Below are positions 2,841-64,000 of a DNA stretch of 64,000 nucleotides, in pieces; the first letter of the stretch is position 1, and each line of letters starts with the position of its first letter. A program made the translations under genes and the position numbers. The notes under the pieces are model-generated. The model was not told where the DNA came from, did no database searches, and worked only from the letters and a program-made list of their open reading frames with translations. The DNA comes from Dimorphilus gyrociliatus (Eukaryota; Animalia; Annelida): the NCBI GenBank assembly GCA_904063045.1, contig CAJFCJ010000061.1, forward strand, positions 24,744-88,743, in the 5' to 3' direction.

Positions 2841-3028
2841 TGTCATTTAAAGAATTAACGGTATTTCATAAATTGATATACTATACCTTGGTTTACTTAT
2901 TTATTAGAAACAGTGTGATTAGCATAGTTTTTGCTTGTTTAAAAAAAAGAAACCTTTTATTAAATTTTTTCTTAAAAATCTCTGTTTTTCATGGATTTAT
3001 CTAAGAAATGTTTAGTTTTGTTACTTTT

Positions 3029-3961
3029 TGTACTTTGTTGTATTGTAATTGTAGGAATTTCTGGTTCGTCACAACTGTAATCGTCCTTTCCAATCATTTA
3101 CCAACTTGCCAAAGTACTGGTCCAAATAGAACCTTTAAAGTTCGTCCACAAATAGTCTAACAAAGGCAATTTCGGTAGAAATTGATTAACAAAACACCAG
3201 TATTTCGTCCAAAGAATATGTATTGAGTAAAATGAGCTTCTAGTTCTAAACAAGCTAGTTTAAACAACTAGCTGACGGTTAGAAAACTGAACTATCAACT
3301 GTTAATTTCGTAGGGTTTATATACTCTTTTAAGGGTTGATAGTTCACAAATTTCAATGTTCACAAAAACAAAAGTAACATTTGAAGACAAAGAAAAGTTC
3401 TAAATATGGTCATGTTTTTATTGTTTTCCTCTTCTAAATAATAGTTGAATTTCGAAGGTTGGAGAGTTGCATAAGATGTAACAATTTTAGTAGGACAAGT
3501 CCAACAATCAAGAAAACATGTAGATTGTATATTTGACCGTTTTTATATTCTACCTTAATAATGATATTCAATTGATTGAGTTAGTAAATTTAGCATCAGC
3601 ATATAAGGAGGAAGTATATCTGATTAATGCATGTTAAAAAGAACAGTATTGTGTATACAATACTGTTGAATAGTGAATATAATCTAACCTTAGAATTTAA
3701 GCATAATTGATAATTAATTGAACTAGTTTTAGTTCGAAATCATAAATTTATGGATTAATAAATTGTAATATTAATGCTAGGTTGCAAATAGCAAATATTC
3801 TTTATATAATTCAATAGGTTTTATTACTGCATAATGTGTATGCACTGCCCTATGCGAAACTAGGTCACTACTGCTTATCTTTATCAGTGCTATCTGCATA
3901 GTACAATACTGGTTCAATACTACTTCTCTATTGTAGAATATAGCTGACGAATGTATGTGTA
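3029..3961. repeat. Unclassified ~0.93-kb interspersed repeat R1, copy 1
   Basis: Collinear high similarity to 33758-34678, from TGTACTTTGTTGTATT to GCTGACGAWTGTATGTGTA. Confidence 0.9.
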
Positions 3962-4502
3962 CAATTGTAGTTGGTGAAACAGTACTATACGTCCAAAAAT
4001 ACAAATAGGAAGGCGGAAGAAGATCTAAAATATTACATACAATAGTAACATTATCTTTGAAGTTAGTCTGGTAAGCATTCCAAGCCATAAGAGGAAGTAT
4101 ACAAATCACAATATTGAACAGCCACATACCAGCAAGTAAGATAACTGCTCTCCTTATTGTCCATATTTTATGAAAATTAAAAGGATTTACAACTGCAATA
4201 AACTTTTCAAATGTAATTAGAGTCAATGTAAATGATGACACAGCAATAATTAATAATACTGATTGAGTCAGGAAAAGACAACTGTAAAAACTTGCTTGTT
4301 TATCAGTAAGATAGAAAAAGCATAAAACACTTATTGAATAGAAAATATCAGTAAAAGTCAATGCAGTAACACCAAAGTTCTCTAGTTTCCAAATATCTCT
4401 ATTTATTGTGCGAATAGCAATTAAATTTCCATTTAAGATCAGACCAAAAATCTGATTACAACTCATAAATGTCATTACAATCACTTGGTAGAAATTATCC
4501 AT
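3962..4502 (-). pseudogene. Class A (rhodopsin-like) GPCR, TM1 to start of TM5, cut off by repeat R1
   Basis: GLILNG (TM1), ALTFTD (TM2), ITFEKFIAVVNPF (DRY-equivalent TM3), TM4 Trp and ECL2 Cys are present. From HIHSS onward the ORF reads into R1; TM6-7 were not found. Confidence 0.75.
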
Positions 4503-4904: not shown

Positions 4905-5700
4905 GAAAAAGAATAAATATTGGCAGTTTTCTCCAATAGATTCAATGCAGTTATTTTTCCTTGTTTCTATTTATCCCATATGCTGAAAATATTTTTCTGC
5001 TTCTTAATGCTTAATTTTTTTGATATTTTTTCAACTTCTTTTCTGATAAGAGCTTTTGAAAGACTGCAATTAAAGGTTCTTCATGTTTCAAAAAATCAAC
5101 TAATAAATAGAAACAAGTATTTGGCATAGCTTTTATCTTAAGTCTTCTATGCCATCCCTCTACATCATTGTTAGTATGAATGCTCATTCCAAATACAGAC
5201 CAATTAGCTGCAGTCCAAATTGAATTTGTAATGCAAGTCTTTTCAATATATTCATATAAATGTCTATATACATTTTTCTCCAAAGCTTCTCTTTTTAAGG
5301 TGGAAAAAGTAGGTGGAATCACTTGAGACGGAAGGAAAGGCAGGGCTAATAATTTTCTCATCATATTTTTTACATCTTTGCTAGTTTTATAGTCAGTTGC
5401 ATATCCCAAATTATAAAAATTGAAACAGTTTTATTTCTCTTTTCCCAAAAAAAGAGGATGAGTTTTTCCCATACTCTTTTCCATCTTATTCCCCTATTTT
5501 ATCAAACAACAGGAACGTTTATACAACCTAGGAAGTAACAAACATAAATTTTGGTAAAAGAACAAAAGGAAAAATGTTGACTTTAAAACATTTTTCTCTA
5601 TAATCTATCATTTACAAACATTTCAGATATCCATTAAAAGAAATTTAATCTATTGCAACAAGTGTGAGTTTTTTTACTTCTTTTGGTGTCACTATTGTCT
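4905..5700 (-). mobile_element. Degenerate MULE transposase 3' fragment
   Basis: LLALPFLP...WSVFGMSIHTNNDVEGWHRRL matches the last exon of the other MULE copies; TIRs not identified. Confidence 0.8.
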
Positions 5701-6040: not shown

Positions 6041-6620
6041 GGGGCCGACAGAAAACGTCCCCAACAGAAAACATCCCCAAACTGACAGAAAATGTCCCCA
6101 CACAGAGAGAAATTGTCACTTTTGCATAAAATAAAGTTAACTTTTTGGATTTTTGAATAAGTCTTTTTTTGAAACCTTACAATTTGAAATATATCAAACT
6201 TATAGAACTTCAATCTTGTTTTGACATTTTGTTGAATTTTTGGATTTGGTTAGTTTTAGAAACCAAATAGCAGATGTTATGCTAATGCTAGGTTTTTGAG
6301 CTAGGGTTAGGGTCAGGGTCAGGGTTAAGGTTATGTGAAATCATAGAATTAGGCAAAGGGTTAGGTAAAATCATGGGATTCAGCTTATGGTAAGTGTCTG
6401 TTGTGAAATTTTGAAATTTTCAATCTGTACTTTTGTCAAAATGGTTTGGGTTAGGGTTAGAGAGTAGCTTATATTCAGTATTTCTTCAAAAGTTGCAGAA
6501 TTGGGCTATTGTTAGCTTGAAGATGTGTTTTGTCAGTTTGGGGATGTTTTCTGTTGATTTGGGGAGGTTTTCTATCAGTGTGGAGACATTTTTTGTTTCT
6601 CAGTTTAAAATATTTGATTT
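6041..6620. mobile_element. Non-autonomous MULE/MITE (A-type TIR) with telomere-like interior; right end interrupted
   Basis: Starts GGGGCCGACAGAAAACGTCCCC followed by tandem ACAGAAAAYRTCCCCA units. An inverted array lies at ~6530-6600, with degenerate GGTTAGGG runs at 6290-6460. Confidence 0.75.
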
Positions 6621-6807
6621 GGGGTCAGGTGTGAATGTACCCCAGGTGGGTGTGAACATACCCAGGTACATTCACACCCTATTTTTATATTTATTTTATT
6701 TTTGAATTTTTGAATAAACATGTACATTGACACCCCGTTTTCATTCTTTTCCTTCATGATATATTTGTTAATATATTGATTAGATGGAATGCAGATATTA
6801 AATAGAA

Positions 6808-9175
6808 GAATTGGGGTGAAACTGCACCCAGGTGAAACTGTACCTGAGTGAAACCATACCCATGGTGGGTGAAACTGTACCTGAGTGAAATCATACCCAT
6901 GGTGGGTGAAACCATACCCATAAAAAGTATAGTTAATTGAAGATGTATTAATACTAAGGACAGTGATATATAATCTAAGAAAATGATAATAAAGAACTAT
7001 TGAAATATAAAAGATGAAAAATCTGGAAAAAGTGAGGATAAAAGAAAGAATACTATGGAGCATAAATGTATGATGTTTGAACTAAAAGTTCATCAGCCAA
7101 TAGTCCTCTAAGTCTATAATTTTCCCAGATTTCAAATATTTTCCTCCCTATTTAATATACTGCTTTTTCTAATACTTGATAATCTTTTTCTCAGACAAAA
7201 GTTTTTGATAGATGATAACTAAATTTGCTTCTCTCTTTAGTTCATCTATCAGCCAATAAAATGATCCTTTAGATGCTACTTTATTATTCATTCTATTGTG
7301 CCATCCCTCAACACTGTTATTACTTCTTATGAACAATGCATATATAGACCAATTTTCTGGTTTCCATATGGAATTAATAATCCAAGTAGCCTCAAAATAT
7401 TCTAATAAATCTCCAAACTTTTCTTTTTCCATCAGTTCAGATTTTAATCTGTAAAATGTTGGAGCAATGATATCAGCAGGCAAAAAACATAAGGCCATCA
7501 GCTTTCTCATGTCTCTCCAGTCTTCTCCTTTTTTCATATACTTCCCAGAGTAGCCAAGAGACTGCAGTAACATTCATTTAAAAGAAAAATTTGAAAAGTT
7601 GATTGAAAATGAATATTATACCTGAAGTTTCCTGTAGATTGCCTGTGTAAAATGGAAAACAGAACCATGAATTTTTGATTCTTGATATATTCTGGATACA
7701 GCTCTCCACAGACCCATCTAAAAATCAATTGTAATTTTCTCAGGTTGTGACATGCCAGTCAGATTTCTGATACTCTGAATTATGAAATACATTTTGAAAA
7801 GTTGAAAAATAAGTTGCTGATAATTATACCTTAAATGCCTTTTGATAGCTTTTTCTTTTTTTTGATGTCATAAAGATGAATGCTAAGGGAACATGTTTCA
7901 TTTCTCCATCTTTTTTTACATAGCTGTGTATAGATAAGAGCTGATAAAATGGATCCTTCACAATCTTGAATGTTCCATCAATAAACCAGTGATTTGATTG
8001 ACCAAGCAAATTAAGTTGGTGGCTGATAGCAAAAATAAGAATTCTTTCTGTATTTCATAGATGTCATCTTGCAAAAAATCATCTGGAATGAAATCTTTAT
8101 TTAAATCAAAGTCCACTTCTTTTGGTTCTTTGGGCCTTAGTTCTTGCCTTGTGAAATTAGCAACTCTTTTCAGATAATCAACATTTGGCAGAGAATCTGT
8201 ATGATTGCTGTGCTTTAAAAGAATTGTTTCAGCTAATCTCTTTCCACTTGAACTTGTGTCACTTTTACACATTTTTTTCAAATCTTTTCTAATTCTGATG
8301 TCTGTGGTTAAATGGTCATTTTTACCATGAATGTGTTCTAACTTTCCCTTTATGAATATTTTCCTCAACTCACTTAGACTTTCTGCATTTTGATGTTCAT
8401 GTTCAATTGAATTTTTCAGTTTTCCATCCACATCACAAGTTTCTATGCCTGGATCTTCAGGTCTGATGGTCTGAAGGAGGCACTTTCTCTTTTCACAATC
8501 CAGACAAACTGATACCTTAGAATCTGAATGAAATAGCTGAATTATTATAATAATCATATGGATTATAGAATGATACCTATGATGCATTTCTGATGAATAA
8601 TTTCATTGCATAGCACACAGGATTTTCTCTTCTGTCTTCCATGTACAACAAGCTTGCAATTTTTACATTTAACTGCCATATTTCAATAATGACTGAAAAT
8701 ATTCATTATAAATAATGCTATCTAACAAACAGTTATCATTAGCATTTATTCAAAATGGCTGAACATTCTTTATCAAATAAATTCAATATTTTCCAAATGA
8801 AGATAAGATGCATAATGAAAATCTTAATACAACATTGAACTAGATTAAATTCCATATGAATTTACCTCTTTTCAATCCTCCAAGATAAACTTTGTCCAAA
8901 TATATTCAGGAAATATGTTCTGACTTTCTAAGTAAACTCTTTCCAAAGTGAAAGTTTTCTTTTTCAATTTTAAAATGGCTGTCTTTTTATATTTTAACAA
9001 TCTTTTTATTGTTTTTGGTTTAGTTATTATTATTTAATAATATAAGATAACTAGGTTTCTTGTGGGTATGGTTTCACCCACCATGGGTATGATTTCACTC
9101 AGGTATGGTTCCACCCAGGTACAGTTTCACTTGCCATGGGTATAGTTTCACTTGGGTACGGTTTCACCCACTCCC
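6808..9175 (-). mobile_element. MULE 'B1' (2368 bp), defective PHD-FLYWCH-MULE transposase
   Basis: 9-bp TSD TAAATAGAA at 6799-6807 and 9176-9184. TIRs are tandem GGGTGAAACYRTACC units. ATG at 8679, with a frameshift in the PHD and a deletion across FLYWCH. WFIDGTFK and SNNSVEGWH motifs are present. Confidence 0.9.
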
Positions 9176-10195
9176 TAAATAGAATACATATCTCAACAAT
9201 ATTAACTACTACTTTAAAAGAAAATGTTGTTGAAAGTGAAATAGCAGCCATTTTAATAGTGGTAGTTTTATTAAATAAACTTTCACTTGGAATATTTATG
9301 CTTGCAAAGGTAAAGCTATATTTACTGAATAAATTTGGACAAAGTTCTTCTTGGAAGGGTTAGGAACAGAAGTAAGTATCTATATATAATCATTGAGATT
9401 GTTGATGCATGATATTTTGATGTAATGTATCATCTTCAATTATGAAAAAGCTCAATATTTATCATAAATAAAATTTCAGCCATTTTGAATATTTGGAAAG
9501 GAGATTTATTGATAACTGGAAATTTTTTCAGATAACCATCTACATTTGATTGGAGATTATAAAATGGCTTTCAAATGTCACAATTGTTATTCAACAATTT
9601 ATGGAAGGCAAAAATATTTGAAATGCAGCCTTTGTAAGAATCTTATTCATAGGAAATGCACAGGTATATAACTCTTTAATCAGCTTTCATGTAATTATAT
9701 TTTTTTTAGAAAACGGCCAGGATTGAAAACAGCCAGAGGTCAGTTGAAAATGGCCATAGGCTTGATTGAAAACAGCCAAAGACTTATTTGTATATAGAAA
9801 ATGATAAACATAATAATATTATTAAATAATTAACATATTTTTGATTGCATGATTTAAATGATTTTTTATGGGTTTGAGTGATAATATCAGTAGTAAATAA
9901 ATTAACCAGTTTCTTTTTTTCAATAGTGTATGTTTCACTGATTTTGAAACTTTCTGTTTGAAACCATTAGGTAATATTCATAAATTTAATAATTTAAACA
10001 TGTGTTATAGCAAAATTACTGTGTGATTTATGTTACAATTACAAACATCTCTCTTTATCCTTGTTTTCAGTTTTTTTCAGAAAATTTTGGATTGCTTTTT
10101 CATAGAAAGGGGTTTTGTTTTATGAGACCACTTTTAAAATGGCTCCTTGTTGCTTTTGTTGCCAAAAGAGAATATATAGAAAATTATGGATCCAT

Positions 10196-13100
10196 GGGGT
10201 TGACAGAAAATGTCCATGAAAGAAAACGTCCATGAAAGAAAATGTCCATGAAAGAAAACGTCCATAAACTGAAAGAAAACGTCCATTAAAATAAACTTCA
10301 TTTAAATATAAATATGTGTTGAAAAAGTAAACCTTTGGTAAAAGAATATGTTAAACATATAATTAATAAATGAAATATTCACAAAAAAAATCACTTAACT
10401 TTTCCTATTAGCTTAATTTTTTAGGAATTATATTTCCTTATGGAGTGAAAGAAAACATCCATAAAGTGAAAGAAAACGTCCATAAAGTGAAAGTAAACGT
10501 CCATACAGTGAAAGAAAACGTCCATACAGTGAAAGAAAATGTCTATAAACTAAAAGTAAATATCCATGAACTAAAAGAAAACATGAATAAAAATAAATTT
10601 CATTTAAATGTAAATCTATATTGAAAAACAAGTTAATAGAAAACTTTTTATATATACAACTTTAGGTTTACTATATAAATTGTGTATTGATTATTTGTAA
10701 ACAACTTTAAAACAAAGACAAACTTTTTTCAAGTTTTACAATTAAATGACCAGTGTTTTCAAGTAAAGTTTTTTGATATCAAGGTATTATCAATTATTTT
10801 CAATAATATAATTCTGAGCAAAGCTGCAGAAGCTGGTTTGCATTAATTTCACCTGTTTTAAAATTTTCCCAAATTAAGAAAAGATCTTTTTGAATTTGGC
10901 TATAAGTCTTCCTTTGAAGTCTAATTATCTTTCTCTCACTTAAAAGCTTTTTGTACAGATTTATCATGTCTGCTTCCCTCTTTAACTCATCAATCACTAA
11001 ATAAAAAGAAACATTTTCTCCAACAATTTTATTCAGCCTTTGATGATAACCTTCCAGATCATTATTTGTCCTTATGCTTTGATCAAAAACAGACCAAGTC
11101 TCTGGAGACCAAAATGTATTTTTTATCCAACTATTAGACACATAGTCCAACAAATCAGACAGTTTATTTTCTTTTATCAGTTGATTTTGAATTTTAGTGA
11201 ATTGATTTTCAATCATGCCATGAGGCAAATATGGCAAAGACATAATCATTCTCATGGATTCCCAAGCTCCCTCTTTTTTTCTAAATTCCCTGCTATAACC
11301 AAGTTCCTTAAACAAAAAAAATATTAATTGGATTGTTAAAAATTTTAGAAATCAATAAACCTGAATTTTTCTAAATATTGCCTGAGACCAGTGAAATGAA
11401 CATCCAGTCAAGACAGCATCAGGCCATATATTTTGTAAAGTTTTCCAAACAGCCTTTTCATAGTCTAAGACTATTTTCTTAGGAGCACAATTTTCAGCTA
11501 AATCCTTCACAGCCTTAAAAATTTAACATGATTGCTTATTAGTAAGTATATTTATGAAATGTAATTCTTACCTGGAAAAGTAGTTTATATGCTCTCTTTT
11601 TTTTAGAAGACAGAAAAGAAAAAAGCAAAGGAACTTGCTTAAGCTGTCAATTTTTTTTCAAAAATACATGAATAGAGTACATTTGAATGAAAGGTTCATT
11701 GGCAATCTTAAAAGTACCATCAAGGTACCAAATTTTACCCTTTGACAAAAGATCCAATTGATGATTTGTTGCAAAGATAATGATCCTCTCATTATTCATA
11801 TTTATATCCTTCTTTAAAAATTCAGGAGGAATGAATGTCATATTCAGCTCAAAGTTTTTATCATTGGGTACAATAGGCCTGTTCTTCCTTCTATTCCAAT
11901 TTGCCACTTCTTTACAATTAATTATATTTGGTAAGTTTGAAGTACTAGAATACTTGACAAGAACATTTTCAGCAATTCTTTTACCTGAAGAATTTATATC
12001 ACTAGAACAATTGTCTTTGATTTCATTTCTTATACGAATCCTGGTTTCTAAATTTTTTATTGGTGAATGACAATGAATGTTTGTCCCAATTGCAAAATTG
12101 CTTCCTTTTTGATTGATGCTTGCTTTACATTTTCTTTTTTTGCTTCTGACAGAACAAGTCCATACAGTAGTTGTTTTTGTTTTTAATTTAATAGTATATG
12201 AAAAACCTTTGTGAAAAAGTAAGTCTTTGCCTTTTTGACTTCCATGTGGCAGAATTTTAAAATGAAAATTGTCAGAAGAATTTTCTTTGGCAGATGTTTC
12301 ACTTTCAAAAGATTCTTCCTCAATTTTTTCAGATTCTATATATGCATTTTGAATTGTTTCAAAATTTTCAATTTCAATTTCATTATCATATTCAATATCA
12401 CTTCCATTAATGATATTTCCTTTGTCAACCTTTGTGTTTATACTTTCATCATTATTGTCATTGCTACTCCATGATATAGATAACCTCAATTCTTCTGTGA
12501 ACTCTTCAGTACTCTTTTCTTGTCCTTGATTATTATCTCCTTTCTCATCAATTTTTAATTTTTCCTCAGTCATGCTGTTATTCTCCTCAATATTCTTTTC
12601 TGGATATTCAACAATTGCTTCTTCCTTCTCATTAAGTTTTGCAGTAGAATTACTTTTTATTGGTACACTTTCCCTGCATTTTTTTGGTTCATCAATTCTC
12701 TTTAACATCACAAAACAGGTTTTTTTAGTTATTTTATAACAAATAAAACAGAGTGGTGATGCTGTTGATGAATCTGGAAGAAAAAAAAACAGTAAATGTT
12801 TTTCAAATAGAAGATAGTACAAACCATGCAGACATTTTATATGACAAATATGCAGGCACAATGAGCATTGGCCTTTTATTTGCCTACCAACAAATTTATC
12901 ATTGCAAATAGAACACTTGTCCATTATTCAATATTTTTTCTAAAATATTGGAGAAAAAGAAGAGCTAAATTAAAATTAATAAATGAATTTGTCATATCAT
13001 TATTATGATTATTTATGTAACAATTAGTATTTTGACAATAACATTGAAAAAAAACTTCATTAACAAATAAAATTGCTAAATTTATGTTAGATTGATTATT

Positions 13101-13465
13101 AATAAAATAATCAATAAGTTTTTAATCACAGAGATTATTAAGAACAAAAAAAACCTCTAAAAATTAAAAATTTCATATTACCTCAAGAGAGTGAAAATAG
13201 AAGAGGAAGTTGATATTTTGTATCTCTTTTCCTGAAGATTTCTTCATTTCTACCAGTTTTTTTAAAGTTTTGTGTTAATTTGTTTTTCAACATATATTTA
13301 TATTTAAATGAAAATTTCTTTATTTTATGTGTTCTTTTGATTCATGGATGTTTTCTTTCAGTTTATGGACGTTTTCTTTCACTTTATGGATGTTTTCTTT
13401 CAGTTCATGGACGTTTTCTTTCGGTTTATGGACGTTTTCTTTCATGGACGTTTTCTGTCGCATCC
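10196..13465 (-). mobile_element. MULE 'A' (3270 bp), near-intact
   Basis: 9-bp TSD TGGATCCAT at 10187-10195 and 13466-13474. Termini are GGGGTTGACAG and GGATGCGACAG, with tandem GAAAGAAAACGTCCAT arrays at both ends. Confidence 0.95.
10800..12924 (-). pseudogene. PHD-FLYWCH-MULE transposase of element A with one in-frame TGA
   Basis: Four coding exons join at GT-AG sites. Motifs: C4HC3 PHD, GKDLLFHKGFSY..WTCS..C..HCH (FLYWCH), WYLDGTFK, IVLDYE, GCSFHW and TNNDLEGYH. The only lesion seen is TGA at 11647-11649, where copies B1, D and E have Gly (KKDG/KKEG). Confidence 0.85.
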
Positions 13466-14016
13466 TGGATCCATATGCACTCTATCCAAGAAAAAATTTC
13501 ATTTGAAATGTCTAAAAGGTAACACTTCATTATTAATTTTGATTAAGTTTTAAAGTTATTGTTTTAGATGGTTTTTGCTCAATGTGTACAACAATCAACA
13601 AATGCCAATTAAAAGTAATTTTGAACAAATATGATAACATTTCCATACTTCTTCAACAATCAGAAACTGAAGGTAACAATCCAATGGCAGTGGACAGCCA
13701 AACCTCAACTCCTGACGAAATATTGGAAGAGAAGAGCATGACAGAAGCTGTTGTTACCACATTTCAATTGGAAGGAGAATTGCCAACAAGTTCTCCAGAG
13801 AACAAAAATATCATGGAAGTTGATCATGAAGAAGAGTGCATGACAACTGAAATCATACAAGAAGATAATATTAATGTAGTTGATGCCTAAAATGAAATAG
13901 AAAGCTCATTTGAAGACATAATGGATGAGGTTAACTTAGATGATGATGGAGCATTTAGAATTTTCAAGAATGGGAGCCAAAAAGGAAAACCATTAATGGT
14001 TCATAATGGTTATTTA

Positions 14017-16654
14017 GGATGTTGTTGAAAACGCCCACTGTTGAAAACGCCCACTGTGCTTGTTGAAACCGCCCACTGTGCTTGTTGAAAACGCCCATTG
14101 TTTTGAACTATTACATTAAACTTACCAAAGCTGTTTAAATACCTTTGAAATTGTAATACTTTATATTGAAATAATACAACTGAAGGAATAAATCTGGTTT
14201 TACAATTGTATTCAGCAAATAGAATCATTTAGAGTAAATATAAAAGATGACAAACAGATTCATGGATGATAAATTGCTGAACATTTTTCCAACAGCTCAC
14301 TTGCACAAATATCACCATTTTCAAACTCATCCCAATATTCATATATTTTCTTCTGAATGTTGGCATAGATTTTTTTTTGCATCCTAGAAATCTTTTTTTC
14401 TGATAGTAGCTTTTGATATACATTAATTAGATCACTTTCTCTTTTTAGTTCATCCACAATGAGGCATTTTCTTGCAAATTTCTGTTGAATTTGTTGTGGA
14501 AACCTTCCAAGTCATTATTTGTTCAAATAGCTCTTTTAAACACTGACCAATTATTTGGTGACCACAAATCATTATCTATCCATGTTTCCTCCATGTATTT
14601 CACAAAATTATTTAATTTGCCAGTCTCAGCTAAGTTCCTTTTAATCTTTTTAAAGTGATGTTTTATAATATTACTGGGAAGAAAAGGAAGAGCTAATATC
14701 ATCTTCATTGCATACCATTCTCCTGTTTTATTTTTGTAGTCTCTACTATAGCCAAGGTCCTAATGTGTTTTTTAAATATTAAAAATTCTTAAAATATCAT
14801 AAAAAATTACTACCTTTATTGTTCTAAATACAAATTTATTTCAGAATACCCTGACACCAATGAAATAGACATCCACCTATTTCTGCATTTTCCCAAACAG
14901 AAAGAATTGCTTTCCAAATTGCCTTTTCAAAATCAATAACAAATCTCTTTGGCTTATAATTATTTGTTAATTCACAAACAGTCTGAAAAAGTTCAAAATC
15001 ACCTTTGGAATATATTTAGAAAAACTTTCATCTTACTTGAAACAACAGTTTATATGCTTTTTTCTTTTTTGAAGACATAAACACATTTAATAGTGGTACT
15101 TGTTTTAATTTCTCATTTTTTTTCAAAAATCCATGTATAGAGAATATTTGTATAAAAGGATTATGGGCATGTTTAAAGGTTCCATCAAGAAACCATGTTT
15201 TAGTTGAGGAAAGAAGTTGCTTATTTGTTGCAAAAATTATAATGCGAAACCCATTTTCATTAATATCTTTTCTTAGAAATCTGTCAGGTAAAAAAGTATA
15301 ATTTAGGAAAACGTTAATACCATCTGGTTCTCTTCGACGATCTTTTCTCTTGTGATAATTGACAATTTGTACACAGGTTGTTAGTTTTGGCAAATTTTCA
15401 GCATCTGTGTGATTTATCAAAACTTCTTCAACAATTCTTCTTCCACTTAATATTAGATTTTCTTGACTTTTATTTTTTAAATAATTTCTTATCAGCAGTT
15501 TTCTCTCATTATCCTTATTTCCCAAATGTATGTGTGCTCTTTTACCTAAAGTAAAAGAACTTCCATTTTGATTGACACTAGCAGGACATCTTTGATTTTT
15601 ATTTCTCCTGCTGCAAATCCATACAGTTCTCTTCTTTGTTTTTAATTTTACATTAAAAGAAAAGCCATTATGAACTAGTAAATCCTTTCCTTTTTGGCTA
15701 CAATTTTCTATAATTTCAAATTTAGATGAATCACAATTTGTAATACTAGGTGATTCTTTTTCAAAAGAGTTTTCTTCAAGATCACTGACTTCAAAATTAG
15801 GATCACTACCAACACTTGAATTTGTAATATCAAGTGAGGGATTATTAATATCCATCACATGTTCATCATACAAATCGTAATGAAATGGTATTTGATAATG
15901 CTGTTGATCATTGCTTTCAATGATATTTTCTGTAGTTGTCTCATTATGTTGATCACATTTTTCAAGTAGTATTATTTTTAAATGGCATTTTGACATTGTT
16001 AAACATACTGAGCAAAGACATTTGTCAGACCCTATTTAATAAATTATAAATATTTAAAAAAAGAAAACAAGTGAAACTAACCATTAATGCACTTCTTATG
16101 ATAATTATGATGACAAAGGTTACATTTGAAGCCAGTGTTGTTTCTTTTAATAAACTTCCTACAAACATTGCATGACACCATGTTGTTTTCAGGGAATGAT
16201 TTTAAGATTTTCAAACTTATTCAATTTTCTTGAAAATTAATTGATTATTTTGTAGACTTTCAAGTAGCAATGTATATTTAATTATTTATACATCAATTAA
16301 GTCATGAATTATGTTTACAACATTAAAATTAACCACAAAAAATTATAAAAATAATAAATTGATCTTACCTCTGACTGAGTGATATTTGGAGAGGAAGTAG
16401 AATTAAAAATGGTGAAAGATTCTTTTGTAAAAATAAAAACTGGTAGTAGAAGATTTTTTTTAAATGATCAAATTTTATTTATAATTCTTTGGCAATCAAT
16501 TTTGATATTCTCTGTTTCAATAAAATAAATATATTAAGAACACATATTAAAAGTTTTAATATTAATAATCAATAATCCTAAAATTGATTATAAACATATT
16601 TTAAACCAAAGTGGGCAGTTTCAACAAGCACAGTGGGCGTTTTCAGCAACCCCC
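14017..16654 (-). mobile_element. MULE 'C' (2638 bp), defective PHD-FLYWCH-MULE transposase
   Basis: 9-bp TSD GGTTATTTA at 14008-14016 and 16655-16663. TIRs are GG..GTTG.TGAAAACGCCCAC arrays. ATG at 16181; PHD exon 16181-16082. There are stops in exons 3 and 4. Confidence 0.95.
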
Positions 16655-18805
16655 GGTTATTTATATACTATAAAAGGACACAGAGAACACTTTAGAATAT
16701 GGAGATGCAGTGTGAGAAATCAAAAAAAAAATGTCCTGCAAGCATAAATGAATATAAAGGTAATTGTCAAATTGGCTCTAAGCAGCACATTCATCCTCCA
16801 ACAGCAAATTTGGAAAAGATCATAGAAATGAAAATTAAAATAAGAGAAAGAGCAAATAAAGATTTAAATGTCAGCAGCAAAAGAATAGTTGAAGATTCTT
16901 ATCTGCAAAATGAAAATGTGTCCAATTTTCCAAAGATGTCAACATCAAAAGCAATTGTTAACTACCAAAGGAGAAAAAACAGGCCAAAGGAACCTGCTAA
17001 GATGTGGTTTTTAGATGGAACTTTTAAAGTTGTAAATCCTCCATTCAAACAGCTGTTTTCCACTCACTCATTTCTAAAAAAAGATGGTGTTTTTCCTCTT
17101 CTTTTTGCAATGACATCATCAAAAAAGAAAATCTGTTATTCCCTTTTATTTAACGTATATTATTAATATTTTTAAAAAAGTCTACAAATATTTCTGCAGG
17201 CTATAAAAAAATTGATTGCTGAAAAATCACCAAATAAAATATTGGTAGATTTTGAAAGAGCCATTTGGAAGAATTTACAAAAGCATTTTCGAGATGCTGA
17301 AGTAAAAGGCTGTTTATTTCACTGGACTCAGGCAGTTTTCAGAAAGATTCAAGTACAAATTCATTTTGTGTTGAATATTTTCTTTAAAATTAATTTTCTT
17401 TCTGTTTTCATAGGAATTTGGTTATTCTGGTGAATATAAAAACCACTCTGGGCAAAAAACTGAAATGAAAAAGCTATTGGCTTTACCATTCCTACCTGCT
17501 GATGTTATTCCAAATGAATTTTATAAAATAAAGCAACATTTGAAAGCAATTGAGAAGTTGCAGGACCTAAAAACTTATATTGAGGATACTTGGATTGAAC
17601 ATAACATGTGGACACCCTCTTCTTGTTCAGCATATGAATCTTCAATCAGGACAAATAATGATATTGAGGGATTCCACAATAGGTTAAATATAAATGTTGG
17701 CAATTCTAAATCTTTCTACAATCTGATAGATGAACTAAAAAGAGAGGCTGATCTCATTCCAATTTATCAACAAATGCTCTAAAATATATTTTTCACATTG
17801 GATACATGTTATTCTTTTAGTTTAAGTAGTTACTTTTAGTGCTTTATTTTTGGTATGGTGCTTTTCATGTTATTTTAGTAAATAAATCACTTCGGACTAT
17901 TATTATAATTTTAAGTTTCCAATATTTTTTTAACATTTATATTTATCATTTTCTAAATAAAAATAAGTCTTTGGCCATTTTCAATCAAACTTCTGGATGT
18001 TTTCAATCAAACCTCTGGCCATTTTCAATCAAGCCTATGGCCACTTTCAACTGACCTCTGGCCATTTTCTACTAGTCCCCTGCAGGATGAATGTCCTTGA
18101 GGTATCCATCCTTTGGAAGAGGTTAACATTGGCCATACATTTATTTGAGTTTATAATTTTACAAGGCAAAAGCTATGGCCGAAAGAACCAAATTTTATTA
18201 TTTAAATAGAGATTTCATTCCAGATGATTTTTTGCAAGATGATATACATGAAAATAAAGAGAAAATTCTTATTTTTACTAACAGTCACGAACTTAATCTG
18301 CTGGGTCAGTCAAATCACTGGTTTATTGATGGAACATTCAAGATTCTGAAGGATCTATTTTATCAGCTCTTATCTATACACAGCTATGTAAAAATGAAAC
18401 ATGTTCCCTTACCATTTATCTTTATGACATCAAAAAAAGAAGCTATAAAAAGCATTTAAGGCATAAGTTTGAGGAACTTATTCTTCAACTTTTAAAAATC
18501 TATTTCATATTTCAGAGTATTAGACACCTGATTGGCATGTCACCACCTGAGAAAATTACAATTGACCTTGAGATGGGTCTGTGGAGAGCTATATCCAAAA
18601 TATATCCAGAATCAAAAATTCATGGATGTGTATTCCATTTCACACAAGCAATATACAGGAAACTGCCTGTATAATATTCATTTTAAATTAACATTTCAAA
18701 AAAAGGACAATTTCATATTTATAGAACTCAAAGCAAGAACTGAGATAATTAATTTCAGTTGTAGTAAGTTAGGAAGAGGTTTATTCTATAATTTCTACAT
18801 TAATA

Positions 18806-20046
18806 CAGTACCGGCGGTAAGTCACTGTTACACCTCAAAAAAATAATATTTTCTTGATTTTTTCTCTTTCCACGCCTAAAGAATGAAAATGAAGGATATT
18901 ATTATATTTAATAATATTCTTCTTATCATTATAGAAAGAAAATATATGTTTTTAATTTAAAGGCATCTAAATCAAACCCCAAGTGGACGGCCCATCAGGT
19001 ATTATATAATTCTGTTATACCAATATCTCTTTCTCTAACAACAGTGAAGCAGGTACTACGAAAAAATAACTTAAATGGGAGAATTGCAGCCAAAAAACCT
19101 GCTTTATCTAAGAGGCAGATAATAAGTAGGAAAGAGTTCTGTAGAGAGAGAGAAAACTGGGGGATTGAAAATTGGAAAAAAGTAATTTTTTCTGATAAAT
19201 CAAAGGTTGAGCTGCATCCTAGGAGAAGGGAGTTTGTTAGGAGGCCACCAGGTAAATGGAATGACCCCAAATATACCACAAAAACAGTAAAATTTGGGGG
19301 AGGGAATATAATGGTGTTTGGCTACATTAAGTTCAATGGAGATAGGGGCCTAGCTTTAGTATCTAATCACATGACAGCTTCGGATTATGTCAAAATTTTG
19401 AGCAGTCATGTTGTCCCAAATTATAGGAGAGGGGAAATTTTCCAGCAGGATGGGGCTAGCTGTCATACAGCAGCCAGAACAAAAGTGTACCTCGAGAGAA
19501 AGGGAGTAGAAACACTGGATCCATGGCCAGCAAACAGCCCAGACCTGAACATAATTGAGCAAATATGGGGCATATGCAAAAAACATTTAATGGCACATAA
19601 GCCAAGAAACAAGGATGAGCTGTGGGAGATGTTCAGAGAGGAATTTTATAAAATTTCAGAATTGGAAATTCAATTCTTATATGAGACAATGGAAAGAAGG
19701 CTTAGGGCAGTTGTAGAAGCTAAGGGTATGCACACAAAATATTAAGGCATTAAAAAATATAATATCCTGTAAATAACAGTCAAAATAAGAACAAAAAAAT
19801 ATTTTTAATATTCTTTTAGAGTAATTTTTGTGATTGTTAACAAGTACTTATGCTCCCATAGAAAATAGGCCTACCACATTAAAATATCAATAATTCAGAG
19901 ATTTGAAATATATTTTCTCTCTATAATGATAAGAAGAATATTACTAAATATAATAATATCCTTCATTTTCATTCTTTAAATACGGAAAGAGAAAAAATCA
20001 AGAAAATATTATTTTTTTGAGGTGTAACAGTGACTTACCGCCGGTA
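18806..20046 (+). mobile_element. Tc1-like element with DD35E transposase (N-terminal HTH partly deleted)
   Basis: TA at 18804-05 followed by a ~140-bp TIR (CAGTACCGGCGGTAAGTCAC) that matches 19908-20046. The ORF is open from ~18957 to 19745 with VIFSD, FQQDG and WPANSPDLNIIE; 35 codons lie between the second D and the E. Confidence 0.95.
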
Positions 20047-20202
20047 GTTGGGATTAGGTTAGGAACAATATTCAAGCAATTGATTTGTAATTAGGTGGGT
20101 CCAAACTAAGGGTTAAGAACAGTAAAACCCTAAAAACAGGCTCCAGGGCTGGGTTAGGGTTTGGGTAAAACTGAAAAACTGTGGGCGTTTTCAACAACAT
20201 CC
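20047..20202. mobile_element. Right half of a C-type MITE with telomere-like interior
   Basis: Ends with GTGGGCGTTTTCAACAACATCC, the exact reverse complement of the left 22 bp of MULE C; the interior matches 39130-39260. Confidence 0.8.
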
Positions 20203-30311: not shown

Positions 30312-30930
30312 ATGGTGGTCATTGATAAAGGAATTCGTCATTTGGTTGTTGAAAAACACCAAGAAGGGCTATCGTTGAATAAAATTGCCAAAATGCTAAA
30401 AATTTGGAGGTTCAATGCCCAAAATATCTGGAAAAAGTTTCAATTGCATTGTACAATTGAAGATTTACCCAGAAGTGGCAGGCCAGTCAAATTAAGCGAG
30501 TGAGATGAGAGAATATTATGCCTTATATCTAGCAGAAATCCTTTCTGGGGAGCAAAAAAAATTTTGTCAGCATCTAAATTAGCCTCAATAATACCCCTAT
30601 CTACTTGCAAGAATGTTTTAAGGAAACATAACTTGAGAGGCAATGTTGCAGCAAAAAAACCCCTATTAAAAAAAAGGCATTTAATAAATAGGAGAAAGTT
30701 TTGCAAAAGACTCCTCTCTTGGAACACAGAGCAAATTAATTCAATTGTGTTTTCAGATGAGACAAGGATAGATTTATATCCAAAACACAGGCAATTTGTC
30801 AGAAGGCATCCAGCAGATAGATTTCAAGCAAAATATGCCATAAAAACATTTAAGGAGGCAAATGGTACCCTAAATATATGGGGTTATATAAAAAGTGATG
30901 GCAGCAGAGGTATACATTTATATATTCCTA
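30312..30930 (+). mobile_element. Tc1-like transposase, 5' two-thirds, disrupted
   Basis: HTH (IAKMLKI..EDLPRSGRP), AAKKPLL and IVFSDETRI; related to the 18.8-kb element; ends before the second D. Confidence 0.85.
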
Positions 30931-33059
30931 ACCACTTCTCAATCTAAAATCTAGTCTTAAAATTTCTCATTTGTGGACATCTTCTGTCGACCCCTTTAAT
31001 TACCACATATTTGAATAATTAATTCAAATTAAGATTTTAGATTATCTTACATTTGAGGATTTATCATCATTTACTTCAATGTTTGCTTGTCTAAAATGTT
31101 AACAATGACTATTATAGAATTATTAAAAAAGTAGATATTTCTTACTTGTCCACCATTTTAGCTCTGATGCAATTTATTCAAAGAGAGAGATTGAAAGAGA
31201 TAGTGAGAGTGTGTCCCTGTGTCTTTAAATTTCTATTTTCTTTTTCATAAAATAAGTCTGAACATGTTAGATTTTCCTTTTGGTCAAATTCTATGATTTA
31301 TTTTAGGCCTACTATTAATATTATTCACAGTTTAAACTGAACTGAATAGTTCTTGTTTCTTTGTCAATTGCAGATATTTAGAGCTTCAAGGTATTAGTGA
31401 AGCATTTCAATCACTGTTTTTAATTGAAATGTATATTGTTTCTAGATTTAGAAGTGAAACTATAAAAGTTCAAAACAATTCTATTTAACAACATTGAAAA
31501 GAAATATGCATTTGTGTGAAATACATTTGGAATGCATCCACCATATTATTCATGTCAAAAAGATGTTTATTCATATATTGCACATGATTTTGTTTGTAAA
31601 ATGCGAAATGAAGAGTATTCTCCTCTTGTGAATAATGCTTATGTGACAAAGGGGAAGGTCAGGCTCTTACTCTTTACAATTGTGTTTATGTAAACAATGA
31701 AATTAAAGAATGTTATGCAACTTTTCACAACATTGTTACTGCCTGCCCAATAAATTCAACTTGTGCAATAAGAAATAAATAAAAAATAAGTACATTTTAA
31801 CATACATATTCATATAGCAGCACCAACTTACAGATAGAATTCAACACATCCCAACCAAGAGATAGAATTATTTTCCGATCCATTCATTAGCCAAAATCAA
31901 CCTTATATCTTTGGACCAACTAAAAGAATGTTGGAAATAAGTTCAAACATACAAATAGTTTATAACTTCCTACCACTTGTAATTGCAAATATATTCCTTC
32001 CATTCTAATAACAAGCATCGATCAAATATCAAAAAGAATGAGGAATTTCACAATTCATATTGACATGCATCTCCCTTTAAATTGTTTAACAAATTTATTA
32101 AAATAGATCCAACTTCTTCAACATTTCTCTTCCATACTTTATATTTAGTTACACTTGCACAATTTCCAATCCATTCATTAGCCAAGAACAAACTATCTGG
32201 ACCAATTAATTGAATGTTGGAAATGAGACTTTACAAATTACAGTACTTATTCATATTCCCTTTCCAATCTATTCATTAACCAAAATAACCCACAACATGG
32301 ATCAACTAAATGAATGTTGGAAAAAGTCTGATAAGAACAAAAACAAAAATATAGAACATTCTTCATCACCCTAAAAGTTTAAGTTCTACTCCCCTATATA
32401 TTTCCCACTTGTATATTTTACTCTCTGGTCTCCATTTGGTAATTTCATTCTTTACTTATCATTTATTTTTGGTTTAAACTTTTTACTTTTTTCTCTATTT
32501 TCTATTTCTATTGTTCATTTTTTAATTCTTATTAGCTAGTTTTTGTACACTAACACATAAGAATCTCTATCAACAAATAAAACACTAGTACCTGGAGAGA
32601 ATTTTTTCAGGAAGATTCTCAAGCCTCTCACATTTTTGATATTAGGTATAATAGACTCTGAAAAGTCCCAGATTTCAAAATACAGAGGGGGACGAAACCA
32701 CGGTAGGTCGAGTAGGTAGGAATTTTTCTTTGGAAATTGTTTTAAACGTCGACTTTGAGCGTATTTTTTCTTTGACTACTTTCCAAAATCGATTGGGACT
32801 CTTGAAGTGTGAGAATCCTGTTTCTCTTTTTTGATTTAGTAAAAAAAACCTTTTGCAAGCCGTAACCCTAACTTAACCTAAAATACATTTTGTATACTTA
32901 TTAAATATATTTCAGAATCATAAATGATACAAAGACATTATAAATTATACCCAAGAAAAGAGTTGTCCAGGGCACGTTTTGTCCAGGGGATGTTTTGTCC
33001 AGCATTCGTTTAGGAGGGCTAATTGAATTAAGACTCTGCTAGATTCATAATGAAAGTTG

Positions 33060-33266
33060 GGATATGACAGAAAACGTCCCCAAATTCATGGTTTAACCCT
33101 AACCCTAACCTAGCCCTTGTCTCTATCTAATCTTTTAGATTACCCCTAACCCTTAGATGGAATCCACCTAACTACAAATCAAAAGCTGCTTTACTCCTCC
33201 TAGCCATTTTTTAACCCAAAATGTCGCTTTCAAAAATCTCACTTGGGGACGTTTTCTGTCGGACCC
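33060..33266. mobile_element. 207-bp A-type MITE
   Basis: Perfect 9-bp TSD TGAAAGTTG at 33051-59 and 33267-75; TIR GG....GACAGAAAACGTCCCCAA; CCCTAA-like interior. Confidence 0.95.
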
Positions 33267-33757
33267 TGAAAGTTGAACCATTCTAATAACTAATTGAAAT
33301 ATAATTTGGCTAAGTCTTATCTCATTTTTTAACAAAAACTTTTAATTCAGAAAATTTCTATTTATAAAATATTCCATTATAAGAGAATATTTTTAAGATG
33401 ATAATGTTAAATACAAAAGAGTTGAAAAGAGAGAAATTATAATAATCATACAAATCAAAACTATTGGTTAAGGGCATTTTCAAAATCTTCCATAGCTTTG
33501 TATAGATATTCTGATCTTTTTTCCCTTTATTGACTGATTATCAATGTCAATTAAAATAGATCCAATTTGTTTAAAACTTCTAAGTGAAATTTCTATTTCT
33601 TTTTCCCAATGTCACCAATAAATCCATCCACTTCTTAATAATCTATAGATGAAAGTTTAAAACTTGCATCTAGTGAATTTCTGCTAGAGTGGATGGATTT
33701 TTGTATTTGAATTTTTTTTCTTGGATGTACTAAAAATTTTATAAAAGTACGATTTCC

Positions 33758-34678
33758 TGTACTTTGTTGTATTATGATAATAAGAATTTCTGGTTCATCT
33801 CTACTGTAATTGTCCTTTCCAATCATTTGCCAACTTGCCAAAGTACTCAAACAAATAGAACCTTTAAAGATCATCCATAAATAATCTTAACAAATGTAAT
33901 TTCAGTAGAAATTAATCAACAAAACACCAGTATTTTGTCCAAAGGATATGTATTGAGTAAAGCGAAGTTCCAGTTCTAAACAAGCTAGTTTAAACATCTA
34001 GCTGACAGCTAGAAAACTGAATTATCAACCATTAATTTTGTAGGGTTTATATACTCTTTAAAGGGTTGATAGTTCACAAATTTCAATGTTTACAAAAACA
34101 ACAGTAACATTTGAAGACAAAGAAAAGTTGGAAATATGGTCATATTTATATTGTTTTCCTCTTCTAAATAATAGTTGTATTTCTCAGATTGGAGAGTTGC
34201 ATAAGATGTAACAATTTTGATACAATTCCAACAATCAACAAAACATGTGGATTGTATATTTGACCATTGTTGTATTCTACTTTAAGAATAATAATTAATT
34301 AAATCAGTTAATAAATGTAGGATGAGTATATGCAGAGGAAGCATATCTGATTAATGCATGTTATATAGAAGAGTATTGCGTATACAACACAGTTGAATAG
34401 TAAACAAAACTTAAACTGAACTTAGAAATAAAGCATATTTGATATTAAATTGAACTGCTTTTAGTCAAATTCATAAAATTAAAGAATAATAATGTTAGGT
34501 TGTATATAGCAATATTCTGTAGATCATTAAAAAGAATTTTTTGCCTCGTACTGTATATGCACTGCTGTATGTGAAACTAGGTGAATACTGCTTATCTCTA
34601 TCAATGCTATCTGCACAGTATAATACTGATTCAATACTACTTATCTATTGTAGAAAATAGCTGACGATTGTATGTGTA
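33758..34678. repeat. Repeat R1, copy 2
   Basis: Collinear with 3029-3961. Confidence 0.9.
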
Positions 34679-36704: not shown

Positions 36705-36911
36705 GGGGTCGACAGAAAACGTCCACAAATGAGAAATTTTAAGACTAGATTTTAGATTGGGAAATGATTAGGAAGAAGAACACAGCAACTGATTTGTACT
36801 TAGGAGGATCTCCTCTAAGGGTTAAAGCTGATGGAAAAGGTTAGGTACAGCCAAGGGCTGGGTTGGGGTTAGGGTAAAAGCACTGATTTGTGAACCTTTT
36901 CTGTCGCATCC
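36705..36911. mobile_element. 207-bp A-type MITE
   Basis: TSD ATTTTGAAT / ATTCTGAAT (8 of 9 match). The last 15 bp are identical to the right end of MULE A. The paralogous empty site is at 39764-39772. Confidence 0.95.
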
Positions 36912-37095
36912 ATTCTGAATATGTCAGTATATCTGATATTTGACTACTATTTGCATTTCTTTTTAAGGTCAGAAGTTGTATTTTCAACCTATTTCTGTTA
37001 ATTAACTGACAAAACTGATTGCATAATCAGCTATTTCTAGAGAATAAAATAGATGGTGTATATTTGGTCTATAATTTTCACATTCTCAATTTACA

Positions 37096-39086: not shown

Positions 39087-39300
39087 AGGGGCTGTTGAAA
39101 ATGCCCATTTTAGAGTTGATTTGGAGTGAGCTATTGGGTTGGGAATGGGTTAGGTAAAATATTTAACCAATTGATTTCTAATCCAGTGGGTCCAAACTAA
39201 GGTTTAGGAACAATCAAGCACTTAAAACATGGGTCCAGGGCTGATATGAATTAGGGTAAAAACCTTAAACTCTAATCTTCAACCCTAATCCTAAACAAAA
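39087..39300. mobile_element. C-type MITE, right end eroded
   Basis: Left end GGGGCTGTTGAAAATGCCCA; interior homologous to 20047-20170. Confidence 0.65.
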
Positions 39301-61938: not shown

Positions 61939-64000
61939 GGGATCAACAGAAAACGGACCCAACAGAAAACGGCCCCAACCGGAACAGAAAACGGCCCCAA
62001 TCAGAACAGAAAACAGCCCCAACTGAGACAGAAAACGGCCACAAAATTTCGAAATATACAATACTCATAAATTGAATAGAATAAGTTAATTTAAAATTTT
62101 TTTCTATTAGTTAGTAAATATTGGATGAAAAAATATTAAATTGTCCACCAGTTTTTCCTAAGAGGTTGAATATTTTGCACTATTTTTAAATTCCTGCCAA
62201 TAGGTTAAAGCAGCTCAAAGGAGATTTTTGCCACAATGCTACCATATTGTTTTGGATGTAAGAAAAAGATTAATAAGCTGAAGCAATGTGTTTGTTCACT
62301 TTGTCATCATAAAGTCCATTGGGCTTGTTTATCAGGTAAGATCCAAATTGATTTTAATGTAAACTAAGCTCTTTCTTTTGTAGATGGATTATGTTCTATA
62401 TGTTCAAGTCTTGATAAAAAAAAAATCAGAATTATTCTGAGCAAATGTGATGAAATTTTACAAGATAAATCTACCAATAAAGTCTCAAATGCTGAAAATA
62501 TAGATCTAAATCATACAAGAGAAGAGATAGATGTGCAAAATATAATAATGGATGTTGATCATGAAGAAGTGGTTACCCTTATTGAAACACTGAATTGTGA
62601 TGCAGAGTACAGGCTTGTTGATAATCTTAGTGAAAGCAGCCCTCTGCATGGAAATACATTACATTTGAATGAGAATGATATCAATATGGAGGAGTCCTTT
62701 GAAAGTATACCAGAGGTGAACTATGACAGCAATGGTAAATTCAGAATATTCCCTACAGGAAGTCAAAAAGGCAAAGAATTACTTGTATCTAATGGTCACT
62801 CATTTGTTGTCAAAAGAAAAGACAAGACTTCCATAATTTGGAGATGTGGAGTTAGAAGCAAGAAAATGCTGCCAGTGTCATTCAAAGAAATAATAACTTC
62901 TCTTTGGGGTCTAAATATCATATTCACCCTCCCAAAAAAAATTTAGAACAAATTATTGAAATGAAAGTGACAGCAAAACAAAAAGGAAAGACTGGCACCA
63001 ATGTTAGTGGAAAACGAATAGCTGAAAATGTTCTGCTTCCTTTTGCAAATATGGGAAATATTGTACAAGTTGAAAATTGCAAAGAAATGATAAATTATCA
63101 TAGAAGAAAATATCGTCCCAATGAACCTATTGGAAGAAACTTTCTTATTAATAATTGCTTTATTCCTGATGATTTCTTAAAGAAAGATGTCCTTGAAAAT
63201 AATGAAAGAGTGATTATTTTTTCCACTTCAAAACAACTTAGCTTACTTGCAGTGTCAAAAGTCTGGTACTTAGATGGAACTTTCAAGATTGTTAAGGACC
63301 CATTTACACAGTTATTTTCATTTCACTCATTCCTCAAAAAAGAAGGTGAATTAAAACAGGTTCCTCTTCTATATGCATTCATGTCATCAAAAAAGAAAAA
63401 AGCATATAATCTGTTATTCAAGGTAGTTCAACTTGAAATTTTCTCTGAAATGCATTTAATATTCATTTCACTGTTTTTCAGTGCATTAATCAACTGCTAC
63501 AATATAAGGAACCAAAAAAGATAATTATGGATTTTGAAAAAGCTATTTGGAAAGCTGTGTTAAATAATTGGGAAAATGTAAATCTGTCAGGATGGTTATT
63601 CCATTGGAATCAAGCAGTTTATAGAAAAATTCAGGTATTATTCAACCTAAACTCAAACTGGAGTCATTTTTAATTTTGTTTTTTTAGGAGCTTGGTTATT
63701 CTACAGACTTCAACAAAAAAAAATGGACAATGGTTTGAAATGAGACAGCTAATGGCTTTGCCATTCCTTCCATCTCACATTATTCCAATAGAGTTTATTA
63801 AAATTAAGGATTACCTTAAATCAATTGATAACTTGCTGATTTTATTGATTATTTTGAAAGAACTTGGATTTTGAATGATGTTTGGTCACAAAATGTTGGT
63901 CTATCTATCATGTGCAATCAGAACAATAATGATGTTGAGGGATTTCACAATAGGTTGAATGGAAATGTTGGAGTGAATGTTTCATTTTATTCTGTGATAG
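61939..64000 (+). mobile_element. MULE 'E', runs off the window; defective PHD-FLYWCH-MULE transposase
   Basis: Left TIR GGGATCAACAG plus an ACAGAAAACGGCCCCAA array. The PHD (CFGC..CSLCHHKVHWAC/CSIC) is split by intron 62336-62382. GSQKGKELLVSNGHSF, WYLDGTFK and NNDVEGFH are present, with frameshifts. Confidence 0.9.

Follow-up and report, generated by a model that had tools for sequence, protein, structure and literature searches.

A composite locus of nested Mutator-like transposons in the annelid Dimorphilus gyrociliatus

Nested clusters of transposable elements (TEs) are a familiar feature of animal and plant genomes, as in the nested retrotransposons of maize and the pericentromeric TE graveyards and PIWI-interacting RNA (piRNA) clusters of Drosophila. 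Here we dissect a cluster of Mutator-like elements (MULEs) at positions 6041-20202 of a 64,000-nt stretch of the annelid Dimorphilus gyrociliatus (C61:24744-88743 of an assembly with 349 contigs and 77,897,245 bases), which has a GC content of ~29%; this stretch is hereafter called the window, and unprefixed coordinates refer to it. MULEs have already been published for this species, in which they make up 1.50% of the assembly (1,167,144 bases; PMC7854359, Supplementary Table 4), with Mariner elements at 0.85% and all TEs at 4.87%, and in which TEs are gathered into islands of closed chromatin devoid of genes (Martin-Duran et al. 2020, PMC7854359). The locus described here holds the same classes of DNA transposons as these islands, namely MULE and Mariner; as far as its TE classes and totals go, that account names no MULE families, terminal inverted repeat (TIR) types, finger-plus-FLYWCH architecture or nesting. 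Among MULEs described in other organisms, the Phantom and Muta elements (Marquez & Pritham 2010; Dupeyron et al. 2019, PMC6446971) combine an N-terminal FLYWCH domain of the WRKY-GCM1 type with a MULE DDE domain, target-site duplications (TSDs) of 8-10 bp and variable, often long or subterminal repeats. The Rehavkus elements (Repbase; PMC6446971, Table 1), known from annelid and arthropod hosts, have a 9-bp TSD, TIRs of 26-400 bp, one open reading frame (ORF) with a PHD-type finger and minisatellite-like repeats near one end.

An earlier note on this DNA had read the locus as a Russian-doll stack in which MULEs of four TIR families repeatedly entered MULE DNA, and had taken this to suggest either a targeting preference or a trap locus. 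Our observations indicate that the stretch is a composite and not a Russian doll: three young MULEs inserted cleanly into two older ones, and the supposed outermost host dissolves into pieces of different families. We regard an ordinary pile-up of cut-and-paste transposons in a TE-rich, gene-poor compartment as the likely explanation. The three insertions are the following:

6808-9175, minus strand: B1, a family-B MULE of 2368 bp, with the TSD TAAATAGAA at 6799-6807 and 9176-9184
10196-13465, minus strand: A, a family-A MULE of 3270 bp, with the TSD TGGATCCAT at 10187-10195 and 13466-13474
14017-16654, minus strand: C, a family-C MULE of 2638 bp, with the TSD GGTTATTTA at 14008-14016 and 16655-16663

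All three TSDs are perfect and 9 bp long and lie where the earlier note had placed them, and its reading that A, C and B1 lie antisense to their hosts agrees with our strand assignments. Their termini begin with G-rich inverted tips, inside which lie subterminal tandem repeats of 16-22 bp; the inverted arms measure 56-181 nt in A and 66-70 nt in B1. On the minus strand of each, a short Cys/His finger exon precedes transposase exons that are split by short introns. The ORFs of A encode Cys/His finger, FLYWCH and putative MULE domains; C retains its Cys/His finger (C1_1, 32.4 bits) and FLYWCH exons, with frameshifts in the 3' exons; and B1, which also carries frameshifts, has lost its FLYWCH region to an internal deletion. 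The reading frames of A and C are still largely open. Paralogues elsewhere in the genome carry each of the three sites empty. A family-D copy on contig C72 (locus L001, 95% identical to the host of A and C) holds a single, uninterrupted TGGATCCAT at the A site and reads GGTTATTCA at the C site, which is empty in five further D copies too (L008-L012), and five E-family copies (L003-L007) have a single TAAATAGAA at the B1 site. Hence, A, C and B1 are true transposition events, neither chance repeats nor mis-joins. Judging from divergence, A appears to be very young, since it departs by only 0.5% from the family-A majority sequence across 1525 aligned interior bases; the identity to the nearest copy is 97% for C and 93% for B1. 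Set beside the 95% of the host D and the 93% of the host E fragment, the values for A and C point to guests younger than their hosts. The insertion site of A, in this single case, is the palindrome ATGGATCCAT.

The host of A and C is the following element:

9706-18075, plus strand: D, a family-D MULE of 2444 bp once A and C are removed, 95% identical to the copy on contig C72

Its length bears out the ~2.45 kb previously proposed. The accompanying claim that excision of the two guests rejoins the exons of D is borne out in full for one exon and in part for the other. With C excised in silico, one ORF runs through HNGY/LYTIK..WRCS (that is, ...GSQKGKPLMVHNGY/LYTIKGHREHFRIWRCS), restoring the FLYWCH exon; with A excised, the zinc-finger exon is rejoined but in a changed frame, owing to a 1-nt frameshift (AAAA in the window copy against AAA in the C72 copy, which encodes the intact finger MAPCCFCCQKKIYRNYGSICTLSQKKFHLKCLKG). 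The right tip of D is intact (..CTACTAGTCCCC), the left tip has lost the initial 9 nt (GGGACTGGT) that the C72 copy retains, and no TSD flanks the element, none being present at the 9705/9706 junction. Because the right tip is intact, D probably entered a B-like element; its left junction is lost. Repeated insertion of MULE into MULE is therefore real at this locus, with A and C in D, B1 in a family-E fragment and, probably, D in a B-like element.

The layers outside D had been assigned to one further element, 'B2', extending from 6041 to 20202, with D between its PHD exon and its DDE region and B1 in its left arm. In its place we find these pieces:

6041-6603, no strand assigned: a miniature inverted-repeat transposable element (MITE, a non-autonomous MULE) of 563 bp, with the TIR GGGGCCGACAGAAAACGTCCCC and the degenerate 9-bp TSD TTGAAAAAA/TTTAAAATA
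6621-6807 and 9176-9705, plus strand: the left 708 bp of a family-E element, interrupted by B1, with a zinc-finger exon at 9558-9662
18147-18700, plus strand: an internal fragment of a B-like MULE (the supposed DDE region), equivalent to 8166-7590 of B1 and 85-93% like it, set between unassigned stretches at 18076-18146 and 18701-18808
18809-20046, plus strand: a Tc1/mariner element bounded by TA on either side, with 139-bp TIRs (95% identical) and an ORF for a DDE_3 transposase at 19044-19745
20047-20202, no strand assigned: the right-hand 156 bp of a MITE, with a C-type TIR at its end, homologous to the MITE cores at 39138-39243, 33070-33182 and 36757-36879

The two ends of the supposed B2 are thus the left end of one MITE and the 20202 end of another. 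Their TIRs, GGGGCCGACAGAAAACGTCCCC at 6041 and the reverse complement of GGATGTTGTTGAAAACGCCCAC at 20202, are of different types, no TSD is shared, and the sequence within is of family E on the left and family B on the right, so that B2 as a single host had to be abandoned. The left MITE is recognizable by inverted motif matches at 6051-6088 and 6542, by an inverted self-match between 6047-6090 and 6528-6576, and by internal telomere-like GGGTTA repeats. The E fragment, 93% identical to the copies of the recent burst described below, ends in intron 1 at position ~738 of the 2712 of family E, exactly where D starts. The former 'left arm' and 'DDE region' belong to different families, since E in its interior matches B1 at only ~65% and the 18147-18700 fragment at no more than 77%, as opposed to 85-93% between that fragment and B1; moreover, a host common to both would be short of ~600 bp. 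The insertion of B1 accordingly stands, but in a fragment of family E and not in the arm of a B2. A composite 'macro-transposon' running from the left end of E to the right end of D or to 20202 was likewise rejected, as no 9-bp pair of flanks matches. Across the stretch we count at least six TIR types in place of the four families proposed earlier.

The Tc1/mariner element had escaped the earlier note; its transposase (PF13358, E 7e-16, with a partial HTH_Tnp_Tc3_2 match), TIRs and TA target duplication are those expected of the group. A second Tc1 copy (L016) lacks its ends and so gave no definition of the termini. Farther along the window, at 30606-31010, lies another Tc1-like transposase fragment, diverged and 39% identical to the 19044-19745 ORF.

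Four junctions (9705/9706, 18075/18076, 18808/18809 and 20046/20047) lack TSDs or a continuous host. As two or more junctions are without duplications, we infer at least two deletions or rearrangements at the locus in addition to the three clean insertions. Such junctions, on a small repeat-rich contig of an assembly in which duplicate small contigs exist, might alternatively reflect collapsed or mis-joined repeats. However, the window has no N anywhere, and perfect 9-bp TSDs around A, C and B1, with hosts that are exactly continuous when set against independent copies, are unlike the product of a mis-join; we consider the chance that the nest is an assembly artefact to be close to negligible.

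The families involved share a make-up that places them among MULEs. The FLYWCH domain (PF04500) exceeds its cut-off of 23.6 bits in A, C and E, where it scores 30-40 bits, and is recovered in D after excision of C. The MULE domain (PF10551) is split by introns, so that with exons searched singly each half falls below the cut-off: an E exon covers profile positions 2-51 (E 0.024), and exon 3 of A covers the complementary positions 56-98 (E 2.8e-5; 24.9 bits, with the cut-off at 27.6). TSDs of 9 bp, within the 8-11 bp of the superfamily, flank A, C, B1, three E copies and a MITE at 33065-33268, the last being a perfect duplication, and the arms of A and B1 supply long TIRs. Taken together, the TSDs, the TIRs, the FLYWCH domain and the split MULE match argue for membership of the A-E elements in the Mutator superfamily. 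All families conserve the Cys/His finger exon, which in A has the pattern C-x2-C-x12-C-x2-C-x4-H-x2-C followed by C-x2-C beyond an in-frame intron. The exon that the earlier note had labelled PHD is a cross-brace Cys/His finger. Its best Pfam match is C1_1 (above the cut-off in C); PHD reaches 19.4 bits where 24 are required, RING likewise stays under its threshold, and a PHD identity is plausible but no more. Compared with Phantom and Muta, the elements agree in the FLYWCH domain, in a putative MULE DDE domain and in their TSDs and repeats, and differ in the extra Cys/His finger exon before FLYWCH and in several short introns. With Rehavkus, compared by description only, they share the annelid host, the TSD length and the range of the TIRs, and differ in having a FLYWCH domain, which is unlisted there, tandem repeats at both ends and a finger nearer to C1.

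Beyond the locus, family E, the host family of B1, provides a view of recent activity. It is a 2712-bp FLYWCH-MULE with the TIR GGGGTCGGGTGTGAACGTACC (e.g., L003:4736-7447), and its copies, at least 22 of which are 99.5-99.9% identical (L003 and L034-L055), carry their own 9-bp TSDs, perfect in three cases; such uniformity points to a very recent burst. Nests recur on other contigs, with E within A on C82, A within a B-type TIR on C101, D within B on C72, and a B derivative within D on C18. A copies on C72 and C45 contain short insertions (636 and 728 bp). Nests are common, yet most copies are un-nested. In the C72 nest (L001, C72:44600-49000), D lies antisense in a coding exon (..HGKNDH..) of a B-family element, between the members of a decayed TSD, the GGTTCATTTT-type pair GGTCATTTT/CATCATTTT, and this B copy keeps ~300 bp that are gone from B1 in the window. 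We rejected the possibility that it is a segmental duplicate of the present locus, as D is antisense there and sense here and the sites differ by at least 60 bp; because of the opposite orientation and the different sites, the two nests record independent entries of D into B. Nor do nested insertions favour the 5' part of host genes, their positions being ~7, 20, 36, 42, 54, 77 and 86% of host length with gene orientation considered.

Whether MULE DNA is a preferred target can be judged from 33 independent sister copies elsewhere in the genome (13 of A and 20 of E), each with a unique flank. In each, the outer 1.4-1.5 kb by the left terminus was scored for MULE DNA, using tblastn with the ORFs of all local families and blastn to their DNA. 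MULE DNA abuts the junction in five copies (15%, exact confidence interval 5-32%): one A in a B-type TIR (on C101) and four E, including one inside A (on C82). The MULE cover of these flanks declines outward, from 14% (50-200 bp) through 13% (200-500 bp) and 11% (0.5-1 kb) to 9% (1-1.4 kb), and at a local density of 9-13% the probability of five or more such cases is 0.17-0.43. The rate of nesting is thus roughly what local MULE density predicts and no higher, and since the two match, a targeting preference for MULE DNA is unsupported; this is the outcome that the earlier note had itself named as speaking against its reading. Against the genome-wide 1.5% of MULE DNA, in contrast, the excess is about tenfold (P(>=5/33) = 1e-4), which reflects a bias at the level of compartments. 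Among orientable nests, six antisense against two sense cases yield no significant antisense bias (P = 0.29), and the 20 E flanks show no target motif, being merely AT-rich with no consensus.

The real bias therefore lies at the scale of genome compartments. FLYWCH exons have 139 of 150 scored matches on contigs C35 and above, whereas protein-kinase domains have 130 of 134 on C1-C31 (Fisher P = 2e-61). By the sum of the highest match coordinates, C1-C31 comprise no less than 50 Mb, or 64% of the assembled sequence. FLYWCH-MULEs are hence a feature of small TE-rich contigs, and kinase genes of large ones. The few MULE matches on large contigs are clustered, at ~2.72-2.77 Mb of C12, at ~1.02 of 1.05 Mb on C18 and at 0.40-0.50 Mb of C26, and the flanks of the sister copies are packed with other repeats. 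This segregation matches the published TE islands in gene-free closed chromatin (PMC7854359).

These observations suggest a simple sequence of events. Older FLYWCH-type MULE copies (E, D and the B-like element) would already have been decaying at the locus when recently active relatives, A, C and B1, entered by ordinary DDE transposition, each with its 9-bp duplication, and a Tc1/mariner element would also have settled between the remnants. Two or more later deletions or rearrangements may then have cut E after 708 bp and removed the left tip of D and both ends of the B-like fragment. With surviving MULE insertions nearly confined to a compartment of ~5-13% MULE DNA, nesting would follow, each insertion widening the target, and recognition of MULE DNA would be unneeded. 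In this scheme, confinement to the compartment as the cause of the nest is our inference from the distribution of the copies.

Several points weigh against so simple a pile-up. At the compartment-wide MULE density of 4-6%, the probability of five or more junction cases falls to 0.01-0.05 (0.03-0.05 at 5-6%), so that some finer clustering of MULEs remains. The ~4.6 kb of host TE DNA at the locus has taken up three or four insertions, as against ~0.05 interruptions per kb in other A and D copies, a lower bound taken from match coordinates and set against a locus that was picked for being nested. The set of small contigs is also partly redundant through duplication, as identical flanks surround the same TE copy in L017 and L019 (C237, C63), in L035 and L043 (C88, C83) and on C259 and C101; these redundant contigs could be either haplotigs or segmental duplications. 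Finally, all 22 near-identical E copies lie off contigs C1-C31, for which chance would give 0.36^22 = 2e-10. Selection alone fits this distribution of young copies poorly, which hints at an insertion bias toward the compartment. The idea that the young E copies are hemizygous haplotigs of loci on large contigs was considered and rejected for the two that were checked, because the flank of one is unique in the assembly and that of the other has its second copy on the small contig C101. A further small contig, C98 (L026-L028), bears a ~7.1-kb tandem repeat.

The absence of very young E copies from the large gene-rich contigs, together with the segregation of FLYWCH exons from kinase domains, the failure of the haplotig explanation in the checked copies and the conservation of the Cys/His finger exon in all families, brings up chromatin-directed integration. 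On this account, the transposases, perhaps by way of the N-terminal finger before FLYWCH, would steer insertion into silent TE-rich chromatin, in a manner parallel to the heterochromatin targeting of Ty5 and the chromoviruses, and the MULE pile-up would be a by-product. Yet the finger is closest to C1_1, with PHD under its cut-off; strong purifying selection in a very compact genome can lead to the same distribution; breaks of the assembly at repeats inflate the TE content of small contigs; and small MITEs with the same types of TIR occur in and near NLR-like genes (33065-33268 and 36705-36912). We therefore hold such steering, as the reason for the gap of young copies in gene-rich contigs, to be an unlikely though not far-fetched alternative to the ordinary pile-up in a TE-rich compartment.

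The older MULE copies also show a decay of CpG. The observed-to-expected ratio of CpG is 0.26 for the window, 0.23 for other TE-rich loci (L001-L063, 285 kb) and 0.02-0.09 for old MULE copies, in which TpG and CpA are overrepresented. Measured against a majority sequence derived from 16 near-identical members of family E, five older E copies (including L056-L059) have transitions at 39 of 107 CpG sites but at 88 of 2294 other C/G sites, a difference of ~9.5-fold; the corresponding comparison for family A was uninformative, there being one CpG in 1526 bp. Yet the species has been reported to be almost free of methylation, with 0.16% 5-methylcytosine in D. gyrociliatus adults and a genome-wide CpG ratio of 0.9 (PMC11292947). 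The CpG hypermutability of TE-rich DNA hints at germline or embryonic methylation that might be confined to the TE islands.

This decay, suggestive of silencing, is also what might be expected of the trap locus that the earlier note had envisaged. A piRNA cluster, for instance, would be dedicated to capturing MULEs and would act as a putative source of small RNAs against them. The crowding into 15 kb of dense, fragmented and nested copies from at least six related families, together with a Tc1 element, and an insertion density above that of the sister copies, would fit such a trap. The orientations are relevant here, and they include one more piece, immediately to the left of the stretch:

4913-5424, minus strand: 3' exons of a further MULE transposase gene (fragment), matched in tblastn by the translated exons of A and C (E 3e-26)

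From 4.9 to 20.2 kb, the plus strand carries E, D, Tc1 and the B-like fragment, and the minus strand B1, A, C and the 4913-5424 fragment, so that four elements against four show no uni-strand orientation of the kind seen in uni-strand piRNA clusters. Similar nests occur on many contigs, including C72, C82, C101 and C18, and the frames of A and C are largely open. We see no sign here of a special trap, and rate this reading as very improbable.

Other repeats in the window belong to the same setting. Small MITEs at 33065-33268, 36705-36912 and ~39089-39290, like those at 6041-6603 and 20047-20202, have A- or C-type MULE termini and 9-bp TSDs (TGAAAGTTG; ATTTTGAAT/ATTCTGAAT), and are built on a common core with many degenerate GGGTTA/TTAGGG repeats of telomere-like type; several are in or near the NLR-like gene region. 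A ~935-bp repeat without inverted termini, present at 3027-3963 and 33758-34678, has at least 40 copies of 98-99% identity and ~900 first-look candidates genome-wide. One more FLYWCH-MULE, on the plus strand at 61940-64000, has a D-like left TIR (with repeats at 61965-62031) and continues past the end of the window.

The locus thus offers a well-documented case of nested DNA transposons and a catalogue of six related MULE TIR types, with at least two families (A and E) recently active in a genome noted for its few TEs. Because nesting follows from where MULEs survive, the nest itself carries little mechanistic weight; what could lead somewhere new is confined to the lack of very young copies on gene-rich contigs and to the loss of CpG from older ones. 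In its overall form, the cluster resembles those of maize and Drosophila, with younger elements inside older decaying ones and truncated fragments abutting one another in TE-dense, gene-poor DNA. It differs from them in that its layers are cut-and-paste MULEs in place of long terminal repeat elements and that their strand orientation is mixed.

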